64,000 nucleotides of DNA from Salpingoeca rosetta (lineage: Eukaryota > Protista > Choanoflagellata). Under the pieces are notes generated by a model, which was not told where the DNA came from, ran no database searches, and worked only from the letters and a program-made list of their open reading frames with translations. This document shows positions 27,791-30,736 of the stretch, piece by piece. The position numbers were made by a program, and so were the translations under genes. Each line of letters opens with the position of its first letter. The stretch's first letter is position 1. The stretch spans positions 228,750-292,749 of the forward strand of contig JAWQFM010000030.1 of assembly GCA_033442325.1 (NCBI GenBank), read 5' to 3'.

Positions 27791-28894
27791 GATTGTCGCG
27801 CGTTGCGTGTTTGTTCGCCGCGACAAGCAAATGGTAGCAAGGGGTAAAGGCGGGTGAGTGGTCGTTGTAGCTTGGTCTTGACGTTTGCACTTGCCACTGT
27901 TGATTGTGGATGCAGAGCGCAGATGAGGAAATGAAGCGACGGCACAGAGACACGCAACCACACCACAGCCCTGGCGTGGAAAGAAGTGGTCCTAAGAATC
28001 CGTTACGTGCAAAGGTTTTGCTCTTCCTGCAATTATTTCTACCGTGTTTGACGCAAGCAACAGCTCATGCCGCGCGGTGAGAATCCGTCACTTTCCCAGT
28101 TTGGAACAGATGTCATCAGGTATCAAAAAAGGAGTGAGCCAATTCCGACTTCGTCACCGTGGCCAAATTCTGCCTCGACACCTCCTGCTTGAGAACATCG
28201 CTTTGATACCCGGGCAACCACAGAGGGGGAAAACAAGCTCTAAGTGCATGTGGGCAAGGAAGGGTGGATATGGAAGTTATCTTTTGAAAGCTGTGACATG
28301 GACGGCATTGCACAGTAGAGCTGGCATTGTTTCGTGTTCCCAAGTAGCCATTCACATGTCACAGCTGACGATGGAAGATTTCGGACCTTCGCAACCCAAC
28401 TACAAAGGTTCGAGAAAAAAAAGTGCTGGAAGTGTTTCCCACCCGAAGGTTGCAGAAGCCGTCCTGAGCGGTGTGTGTGTTTGTGCGTGTGTCTGTGTGC
28501 GTGTGTCTGTGTGCGTGTGTGTGTCAGCTTGTTGTTTGTGAGCTTGTCAACAAGCAGCCTGTCCTTGCCCTGAACAGACACAGTGCAAGCATACACAAGC
28601 CACAACAGCACAACTCGAAAGCGAAAACTCGTATCGGCCTTTCTGTCGTCTGTGTGTGACCACACAGACACACAACGATCAACACCACGAATAACCTGCA
28701 CCATAAACACGCAACCCTCTCTTTACAAACAGCACAATCAACAGGCAAGCAAGGTAGGGCAGACTCAATCAATCAATACAATCAATCTAGTATCGGCCAG
28801 TGGAGTCACTGCTAGCGTGCCGCCTCGCCTGTCATTCGTGCTGCGACGACCAAAACGCCCATCGGTGACCAACCTCTTGCTACCACGAGCCGCT

Positions 28895-29808
28895 ATGAGT
28901 GAAACCAGCGATCAAGGTACAGGTGCCGCTTGTGTGCTCTTGTTTGCATCAAGCTTCCATTATGCCTCTTCTGTGAGACAAATGACTGTTGCCGCTTCTC
29001 GTCATCTTCTTCATACAACCGCCTGCTTCTCGACTTGGTTGTAGTGAGGGCAGTTATAGCTGACTGGGATGGTCGACATGACAACACCAAGGGTCGTGAG
29101 GCTAAAGCACATCATGCGCATCAAACATTTCGATATGCAGCACCACTCTCAACCCTTTCCGGTGGTCGCGGGGTGGTGACGCTGGCAACTACTCGCGTTC
29201 CTCCCACGCCACTGCCGTCTCTTCTTGTTGACGGCAATGACGGGTTTGAATTTACGTCGTACCTCCAAGCTGTTCACATTCGCTCGGCCACACTCCAGCC
29301 TTCCCGTCATGCCGACGCGCTTGCACGAACGATCCGCCCCGAGAAGATGGCTGCATTTCGAAGAATCATAAAACAATATGTTGCCTCGAGTGGAGACACA
29401 GCCGCCCCAGCGTGGCGGATTGTGAGAGATGACGAGCGCCGCCTTGCGAGTGTCACACCAAACAGGTTTCTCGTTGTCTCCAATAGGAAGCTTCTCAAAG
29501 ACCATGGCTTTGTGTATGCCCTCCCCCTGGACCACCGCGGCAGGCACAGGACTGACGCCTTCTACACACTGGATCATCGCGAACGCCGTGAGGATCTCTG
29601 CATCGATTTGCTCTTGATTCACGCTACAGCAGCATTTCATATTATCCGCCCTGTAACCTGGATACGTTCATATTCATCTCATTTCCGTCACACATCGCGG
29701 TACAACTGTCTCACAGAGCTCAACGGTATCCAAGGCAACCCAGAAAAACAAAGCATTCGCCGCGACGCCCACGCTCAAGTCAAGCGCATGCTTGGCCTGA
29801 AGTCTTGA
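28895..29808 (+). CDS. 261-aa protein with two tandem PemK/MazF-like domains (putative endoribonuclease)
   Basis: Exon 1 28895-28916 (ATG...CAAG|gtac) and exon 2 29045-29808 (gtag|TG) total 786 nt in frame, with no microsatellite. Domain 1 carries DNTKGRE...RYAAPLS, LATTR, HIRSA and ARTIRPEKMAAFRRII, matching the MazF layout. The CDS is fairly secure; the family call is by eye. Confidence 0.62.
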
Positions 29809-30265
29809 AGTGAACTTCGTCGCACCCTTCCCATCCTTGCGTTCCCCTGCACCCCTGTGCCTTTTGTGTTTGTTGCCCAATCTGATGATGTCTTTCACCG
29901 AATCTGCCCGAAATGGTGTTTGTTCTTTTCTGGACATGTCATTCACCCCTCCTCACTTGTTGGTTGCACTGTGGAACCATCCGTCCAATGTACTTGAGAT
30001 GTGTCATTTGTTTGTACTTGTGCTCTGTTTCAGCTCGTGCACTCGTGTCATGCTCCTGTATCAGTCGTACCTGTGTTCCCGTCTTGCCTCAATTGCTTGA
30101 CTATCAGTCTGTCGACTCTGCCCACCCCTCCCACCTTTGTCTCTTCACGGTCACTGCTACCTCTCCTTCCCGCCCGCCTTCGTGTTCATTCATGTCTTTA
30201 TGTTTAGTCCCTTCCTGCCTCGACCTCGACTCCTAAGCCCGCATGCGCCTGTTTGCTCTCCCCAG

Positions 30266-30296
<31 letters not shown>

Positions 30297-30736
30297 GCAA
30301 TTGACCCTCAATTCATTCACGCTCGCAGTTCATTTCAATCCACCACAACGCCATGTCGCCTTCACTCCAGTCATCGATCGTGATCTTCAATACACTTAGC
30401 CCATTCACACAAAACCAAGCGGCAAAACGCAGGCAGCAAGCAAACAATCATGGCCAAACACCACAGCGCGCGGAAGGTGCAGTCGTAACACAAGGAAGGA
30501 AAAAAAAGGAGAGAGGAAAGAAAACAGCGCAGTCGCATCACCCATCACAGCATCACACCACACTACCACACGAACCATCAATCAATCAACCGACCAACCC
30601 ACAAAACGCAGACAGCAGCAGTGTAGTCCAACACACGCACAAACCAAGAAGAGAAGGTATCTGTCTAATCATTTTCCCACCACCACCACCACCACCACCA
30701 CAACAACAACAACAACAACGTGCCCCCCCCACCCCA

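Follow-up and report, generated by a model that had tools for sequence, protein, structure and literature searches.

The gene PTSG_10565 of the choanoflagellate Salpingoeca rosetta appears to encode a two-domain protein, and the predicted structure of a paralogue supports the assignment of its first domain to the fold of the MazF/Kid/PemK toxins. We see about an even chance, judged from structural models, that the protein is a lineage-specific single-chain pseudo-dimer of the MazF/CcdB fold, encoded by an intron-bearing gene, that has its one MazF-like active site in domain 1 and lacks an antitoxin partner. MazF/PemK toxins are treated as components of prokaryotic toxin-antitoxin systems. A full-text search of approximately 8.4 million papers yielded no report of a eukaryotic MazF or of a tandem single-chain MazF, a preprint on horizontal gene transfer in S. 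rosetta mentions neither MazF nor PemK, and PTSG_10565 itself is mentioned in no paper found. If real, the pseudo-dimer would illustrate how a dimeric bacterial toxin can become, in a eukaryote, an asymmetric enzyme that consists of one chain and works without an antitoxin, and would add one more prokaryotic conflict system to the growing list of those reused by eukaryotes. S. rosetta is genetically tractable, and the idea of a pseudo-dimer is therefore directly testable.

Gene model, paralogues and genomic setting

The gene lies within a stretch of 64,000 nucleotides, hereafter the window (G000:C30:228750-292749), of the 55.4-Mb genome. Its open reading frame begins with the ATG at 28895 and ends with the TGA at 29806-29808, exactly as the sequence-only reading had placed it. 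The peptide strings quoted in that reading were all found in the translation, and the E. coli MazF strings that it had given proved correct when mazF of NC_000913.3 was translated. A word-indexed search of 5.8 billion proteins identified one match to the open reading frame, namely the hypothetical protein PTSG_10565 (P0001) of S. rosetta with a length of 229 amino acids.

The exon-intron structure was deduced by comparison with two paralogous genes coding for the proteins P0002 and P0003 and is listed in the table below. Intron 1 agrees in position, phase and donor hexamer with the first intron of P0002 (G/GTACAG in both); the acceptors read ...TGTAG/TG in the window and ...TGTAG/CT in P0002, both in phase 1. 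The public model of PTSG_10565 instead uses an acceptor approximately 96 nt further downstream, which removes 28917-29140 and thereby 32 codons. These codons show a coding-like GC1 of 0.68 and contain a G, N, G, E and R that are invariant among the paralogues. Both the homology to P0002 and the family-invariant residues of the 32 codons favour the junction 28916/29045, which had already been suggested from the nucleotide sequence, over the public annotation.

The segment 29588-29716 had been translated in the earlier gene model, a reading that probably does not hold. In P0002 and P0003, annotated phase-1 introns follow right after ...FYHFETKSR and ...FYHFDVLPDFH, respectively, and the segment is located at the equivalent place in the window gene. 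Exon 3 starts with AGCTCA in the window gene and in the locus of P0002 alike, and the 43 residues encoded by the segment are missing from P0002 and P0003. Its composition (GC 0.46, T 0.32, in-frame GC1 0.47) resembles that of intron 1 and differs from that of the exons (GC 0.56, GC1 0.66). Place, phase and composition thus point to a probable second intron. It is in frame and stop-free, which is why both the annotation and the sequence-only reading ran through it; the string IDLLLIH, put forward there as a motif of domain 2, falls inside this intron and is therefore probably not part of the protein. With intron 2 removed and the junction 28916/29045 used, the product comprises 218 residues and can be aligned over its full length with P0002 and P0003. 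As annotated in GCA_000188695.1, PTSG_10565 appears to be mis-spliced at both ends: it skips 32 conserved codons, among them that of the putative catalytic Arg, and retains an in-frame intron of 129 nt. The gene model given here corrects the public one in both respects.

Table. Positions of the features discussed in the text. Positions refer to the window unless a locus is named; residue numbers in brackets follow the numbering of exon 2.
Feature	Position	Strand	Remarks
Exon 1	28895..28916	+	ATG plus 7 codons (MSETSDQ) plus first base of codon 8; P0002 shares the 7-codon mini-exon, followed by donor GTACAG
Intron 1	28917..29044	+	128 nt, GTACAG...TGTAG, phase 1; T-rich, GC 0.48
Exon 2, first part: domain 1 (MazF/Kid-like predicted fold)	29045..29400	+	Paralogue alignment, AF2 model of P0002
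Exon 2, second part: N-terminal two thirds of domain 2	29401..29587	+	WRIV...RFLVVSNRKLL...FVYALPLD...FYTLDHRER
Proposed intron 2	29588..29716	+	129 nt, GTGAGG...CTCACAG, phase 1, in frame, stop-free
Exon 3: C-terminal helix of domain 2 plus TGA	29717..29808	+	...IRRDAHAQVKRMLGLKS; aligned counterpart of the last exon in each of P0002 and P0003
Family-invariant Gly (G16)	29092-29094		
Family-invariant Glu (E18)	29098-29100		
Family-invariant Arg (R29)	29131-29133		
Family-invariant Ser (S35)	29149-29151		
Family-invariant Thr (T48)	29188-29190		
Family-invariant His (H77)	29275-29277		
Family-invariant Arg (R79)	29281-29283		
Kelch-like stretch	29143-29190		APLSTLSGGRGVVTLAT
(GT)n/(CA)n microsatellite	about 28470-28530		
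(GT)n/(CA)n microsatellite	about 30270-30300		
N-terminal extension of P0003	L003:2281-2526	-	P0003 residues 1-82
Piece with a PemK/MazF N-terminus	L005:1501-1635 (G000:C22:986872-987006)	+	45 codons

When the genome was searched in six frames with the protein and again with a three-sequence profile, exactly three copies were detected: the window gene, L002 on C1 (P0002, 227 amino acids; E 6e-14 and 33% identity to the window protein) and L003 on C16 (P0003, 290 amino acids). The two paralogues are 30-33% identical to the window protein, and the identity among all three copies ranges from 24 to 42%. All of them keep open frames, both intron positions and identical invariant residues. A profile search of 1.84 billion representative proteins retrieved no further relatives outside the three paralogues; the family consists of three dispersed copies and is found nowhere else. 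Two repeat proteins from this library of 1.8 billion sequences (P0004 and P0005) were rejected, because their scores were summed from weak repeat matches with an E-value above 90 for each domain. Designer Kelch propellers (SAKe) were dismissed as PDB relatives for the same reason, their scores being sums of weak "APLS..G.GV" repeat matches with domain E-values above 90. The stretch of domain 1 that resembles the motif of a Kelch blade drew SAKe (7ONG) to the top of the PDB profile search and is a trap for automated annotation by way of summed repeat scores.

The three proteins have a pI of 10-10.6, to which both domains contribute with values of 9.6-11.1, and none of them contains a hydrophobic leader or a membrane segment. 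These properties fit an intracellular nucleic-acid-binding protein. P0003 carries an N-terminal extension of 82 residues that is absent from the other two copies; it is joined to the remainder across a (GT)n-filled intron and may be an artefact of annotation.

The three genes are located on scaffolds of 0.74, 2.68 and 1.48 Mb, and their neighbours code for a kinesin, Ndc80, a TPR protein, an NDUFB7-like protein and a sulfotransferase, in addition to genes without Pfam hits. As all three copies contain introns and reside on large scaffolds amid ordinary eukaryotic genes, PTSG_10565 is a eukaryotic nuclear gene and not a bacterial contamination, which bears out the intron-based argument of the sequence-only reading. 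Among the flanking genes of the three loci, no neighbour is common to the paralogues and no operon-like partner exists; at the level of Pfam, comparison of these genes revealed no evident MazE/Kis-type antitoxin adjacent in one operon.

Sequencing runs were also inspected at the locus. Three RNA runs from 2026 contributed no locus reads among approximately 46 million sampled; since the presence of S. rosetta in these runs is not demonstrated, this is no valid test of expression or of the splice junctions. Run X1 yielded a DNA-like contig over the locus, in which both introns are still in place. The contig comprises 1792 nt and ends near the two microsatellites that flank the gene on either side, a pattern which the breakage of short-read DNA assemblies at repeats of this kind would produce. 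Run X4 (from 2023, guessed to be RNA) contained 19% of the sampled locus words (window 28700-30000), which might stem from a transcript fragment.

The predicted fold of domain 1

The protein that was folded is P0002, and the window protein is thus represented by models of a paralogue with 33% identity. The AF2 model of P0002 was calculated from an alignment of three sequences and reached a pLDDT of 65 and a pTM of 0.63; one of five models was confident. For this model, nearly all of the top 50 Foldseek matches are MazF, in line with the likeness that had been proposed from the sequence. Superposition of residues 6-129 on whole MazF chains by means of VIA-align gave Z values of 8-9.1 with an rmsd of about 3 Å over approximately 100 residues; Z values of 8-9 come close to what can be attained by models that lack clear relatives. 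Among 48,161 PDB representatives, which were searched exhaustively, the 13 highest-ranking ones were without exception MazF, Kid, PemK, CcdB, CptN or ToxN toxins. The top ten of them were MazF/Kid/PemK structures (Z 7.0-8.6), which were followed by CcdB (6.0), CptN (5.8) and ToxN (5.0) and then by unrelated folds with values of at most 5. A search of the ESM Atlas likewise led to a PemK cluster (TM 0.68, measured on the match). The barrel of MazF, Kid and CcdB with its C-terminal helix is present in domain 1 of the predicted P0002 model.

The sequence comparisons of domain 1, in contrast, were no better than chance, and the alignment with E. coli MazF given in the sequence-only reading lacks statistical support. 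When its three-sequence profile was aligned by hhalign with a 15-sequence MazF/PemK alignment, the score was equalled by 22 of 100 column shuffles. Neither the window protein nor its halves produced a hit in Pfam at E<=10, so that the PemK profile match anticipated for each half was not obtained, and NCBIfam contained no match to the protein or the halves either. A phmmer search of the PDB with the window protein returned noise only, for example an integrase with an E-value of 0.4. A language-model search with the whole protein and with domain 1 of the window protein suggested penicillin amidase (0.93); this candidate was rejected due to low recognition and low feature sharing.

The invariant residues of the family are G16, E18, R29, S35, T48, H77 and R79 in the numbering of exon 2. 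In the colinear global hhalign alignment, which is itself not significant, they are aligned to G22, E24, R29, S35, T52, Q77 and K79 of MazF. R29 and T52 are the accepted catalytic pair of MazF (PMC11394972). The Arg and Thr that the sequence-only reading regarded as the catalytic residues are candidates for this pair: both are invariant in the three paralogues and are aligned to R29 and T52, though in an alignment that lacks significance.

Domain 2 and the packing of the two domains

Domain 2 had been described as a diverged second copy that lacks the catalytic Thr. Sequence signals and the ESM Atlas model argue for this description, whereas the isolated AF2 model does not resemble MazF. PemK_toxin is the only Pfam family that is matched by P0003, and the match covers the N-terminal part of domain 2 (E 0.004-0.009); its 16.7-17.9 bits are the best value within the family and lie under the gathering score of PF02452 of 23.1 bits. 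Falling below this threshold, the family is not a plain member of PF02452. The best non-repeat PDB sequence matches of the family profile are MazF-mt1 chains (E 0.19-1.2), which are matched in two in-register stretches, one per domain. Alignment of domain 2 with the MazF alignment by hhalign resulted in a local score of 18.4, compared to 9.4±1.5 for shuffles and 8.9 for the reversed control, and in a global score of 15.8, compared to 3.5±2.1 and 2.4, respectively; in both modes, none of 100 shuffles reached the score. In the ESM Atlas model of P0002 (pTM 0.75), residues 135-226 resemble a PemK cluster (TM 0.69/0.60) and a CcdB cluster (TM 0.69/0.64). With respect to language-model features, the three named clusters nearest to domain 2 are all PemK (score 0.85), which we regard as a lead only.

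The isolated AF2 model of domain 2 of P0002 (pLDDT 71) matched no MazF chain at Z>=3, and neither the PDB nor the Atlas yielded a significant fold match; the best Z was 5.2 to Aha1, and SAUGI, DUF3055 and SpoVG had values of 4-5. Likewise, domain 2 of the full-chain AF2 model matched only generic sheet-plus-helix folds. In an hhalign test for internal duplication, the three-sequence profiles of the two domains showed no similarity to each other. Compared to MazF, domain 2 is shorter by about 25 residues, an Asp occupies the position equivalent to Thr52 (LPLD / MPWD), and the Arg of domain 2 is lost in P0003. The evidence is mixed and leans towards a shortened MazF/CcdB-like domain; in the reading that we favour, domain 2 would be a copy of the MazF/CcdB fold that has become shorter and catalytically degenerate, with Asp replacing the catalytic Thr.

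The sequence-only reading had further proposed that the two domains pack as an asymmetric pseudo-dimer, and a controlled complex prediction is in agreement with this proposal. If domains 1 and 2 of P0002 were supplied as separate chains, a median ipSAE of 0.71 was obtained, compared to 0.01 for the best control. The contacts agreed to at least 75% between runs, and the pLDDT of the partner was at least 73. The mark that has to be reached in this test is attained by 51 of 78 solved complexes and by 2 of 108 mismatched pairs. The predicted interface is formed by equivalent elements of both domains. Each contributes the residues that follow strand 2 (LSQDRRT / VVSNERL), the beginning of strand 3, one of the late strands (IHIRTG / PEFYHF) and its C-terminal helix. 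The helix of domain 2 is encoded by exon 3, which is helical in both AF2 models. This is consistent with the dimer of MazF-mt3, in which helix alpha3 touches residues 32-35 of the opposite subunit. The predicted packing is therefore MazF-dimer-like, with the C-terminal helix and the post-strand-2 segment forming an intramolecular pseudo-dimer. The pass may in part result from the model's memory of solved MazF dimers; in this case it would show likeness to MazF dimers and not actual binding.

Proposed mechanism, alternative explanations and related systems

If PTSG_10565 is spliced like its paralogues, it would give rise to a soluble, very basic two-domain protein of about 218 amino acids. Domain 1 would retain the residues with which MazF binds and cuts RNA, i.e. 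the Gly-x-Glu loop, the Arg and the Thr. The domains would pack via the interface elements of the MazF homodimer, that is, the post-strand-2 segment, the late strand and the C-terminal helix. As domain 2 is presumably degenerate, the chain would form a pseudo-dimer by itself and possess a single active site where the MazF dimer has two. The protein would be expected to cleave single-stranded RNA sequence-selectively and independently of metal ions, either in the cytosol or in the nucleus, and to be controlled via expression and not by an adjacent antitoxin. RNA cleavage, the biological role and a bacterial origin of the family are what we infer. More tentatively, and with a probability that stays well short of even, it is conceivable that the choanoflagellate lineage acquired a MazF-type toxin gene from bacteria, that duplication and fusion of this gene gave rise to a single-chain pseudo-dimer in which one active site is still functional, and that the gene gained spliceosomal introns and was expanded to three paralogues, which serve as antitoxin-free, regulated endoribonucleases. 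Such an enzyme could act, for example, in antiviral abortive infection or in a stress-induced shut-down of translation. No functional RNase of the MazF family would have been described before from a close relative of animals. A secretion for prey killing, which had been considered as a further role, is disfavoured, as the absence of a signal peptide from the three protein sequences argues against it.

It is also conceivable that only domain 1 is MazF-like, and that domain 2 is an unrelated sheet-plus-helix module which acts as a cap or regulator of domain 1, for instance by inhibiting it within the chain or by binding nucleic acid in addition; no tandem duplication would then have taken place. 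In favour of this, domain 2 resembles generic folds (Aha1, BPI, SAUGI and SpoVG at Z 4-5) and no MazF when modelled by AF2, be it in isolation or as part of the whole protein; the profiles of the two domains are dissimilar, and domain 2 falls short of the length of MazF. We nevertheless regard it as unlikely, given the four PemK signals of domain 2 (Pfam, hhalign against shuffled and reversed controls, language-model features and an ESMFold TM of 0.69) and the equivalence of its interface elements to those of domain 1. A doubt of a more general kind concerns the evolutionary link to MazF as such: the family could be a lineage-specific orphan with a function other than RNA cleavage, whose fold match is the result of convergence on a small barrel of a common type or an artefact of the shallow alignment. 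No match exceeds a curated threshold, the profile of domain 1 aligns to MazF like its shuffled versions, and the models are of moderate confidence, stem from three sequences and give Z values of 8-9 near the reach of models without clear relatives. However, the 13 best of 48,161 structures belong to one superfamily and are matched with whole-chain coverage prior to a clear drop, the family-invariant residues fall on functional positions of MazF, and PemK signals arise from Pfam, the PDB sequence search, ESM features and ESMFold. We thus consider an orphan to be less probable still than an unrelated domain 2.

Even if the fold is accepted, the protein could be a CcdB-like or otherwise non-nucleolytic member of it, such as a topoisomerase poison or an RNA-binding protein that does not cleave. 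The fold is also that of CcdB (Z 6.0 with domain 1, TM 0.69/0.64 with domain 2 of the ESM Atlas model), and the loop between Glu and Arg is six residues longer than that of MazF. Yet every match stronger than that to CcdB is a MazF/Kid-type endoribonuclease, and the Arg and Thr that characterise MazF do not vary within the family; moreover, the target of CcdB is gyrase, which to our knowledge is no nuclear eukaryotic enzyme. This makes a non-nucleolytic protein very unlikely. Last in probability comes an unexpressed locus, i.e. a decaying copy or an artefact of annotation, to which one might ascribe the lack of reads in the three RNA runs, the fact that no transcript-derived contig encodes the annotated protein, and the loss of seven residues from the window copy that both paralogues have. 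The RNA runs carry no weight here, as the presence of the organism in them is not shown, and a decaying gene is difficult to reconcile with three copies of 24-42% identity that have retained open frames, intron positions and invariant residues, or with an exon GC1 of 0.66 that is coding-like in comparison to 0.47 in the intron.

Among known systems, the pseudo-dimer proposed here is closest to MazF/Kid (PemK), the endoribonuclease toxins of type II systems (PF02452; E. coli MazF 5CR2, M. tuberculosis MazF-mt3 5HK3). The predicted domain 1 spans the whole MazF chain, and Gly-x-Glu, Arg and Thr are found at the positions of G22/E24, R29 and T52 in the non-significant alignment mentioned above. 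Further similarities are the basic character of the protein and a C-terminal helix that is part of the partner interface, as predicted here. In contrast to MazF, the S. rosetta protein is eukaryotic, is encoded with introns, and combines two domains in one chain instead of forming a homodimer. Its gene has no evident antitoxin next to it and is not part of an operon, and the protein scores below the Pfam threshold. The Glu-Arg loop is longer by six residues, and the second domain is shorter and devoid of the Thr. The gyrase poison CcdB (PF01845; 1VUB) belongs to the same fold superfamily, with the values for both domains given above, but is a poorer match for domain 1 than MazF. CcdB is not known to have the RNase Arg/Thr pair and acts on DNA gyrase. 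The type III toxins ToxN, CptN and AbiQ (4ATO, 4RMO, 4GLK) are endoribonucleases of anti-phage abortive infection and distant members of the domain 1 fold (Z 5.0, 5.8 and 4.1, respectively). They are neutralised by an RNA antitoxin repeat array, are larger single-domain proteins, and the matches to them are much weaker.

A stray PemK piece was detected elsewhere in the genome. At L005, 45 codons correspond to the N-terminus of a bacterial PemK/MazF (…DIWLVN-stop-SPARGTEPGKIRPSVIIQKNLIN…) and score 34.9 bits on PF02452, which is above the cut-off. The piece is no nearer to the three-gene family than any other PemK. It contains one in-frame TGA, is AT-rich unlike its surroundings, and directly adjoins a (CA)n microsatellite and a run of approximately 900 N. 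Its source could be bacterial (prey) DNA, of which a fragment was placed next to a gap in the assembly, or a horizontal acquisition that is now dead.
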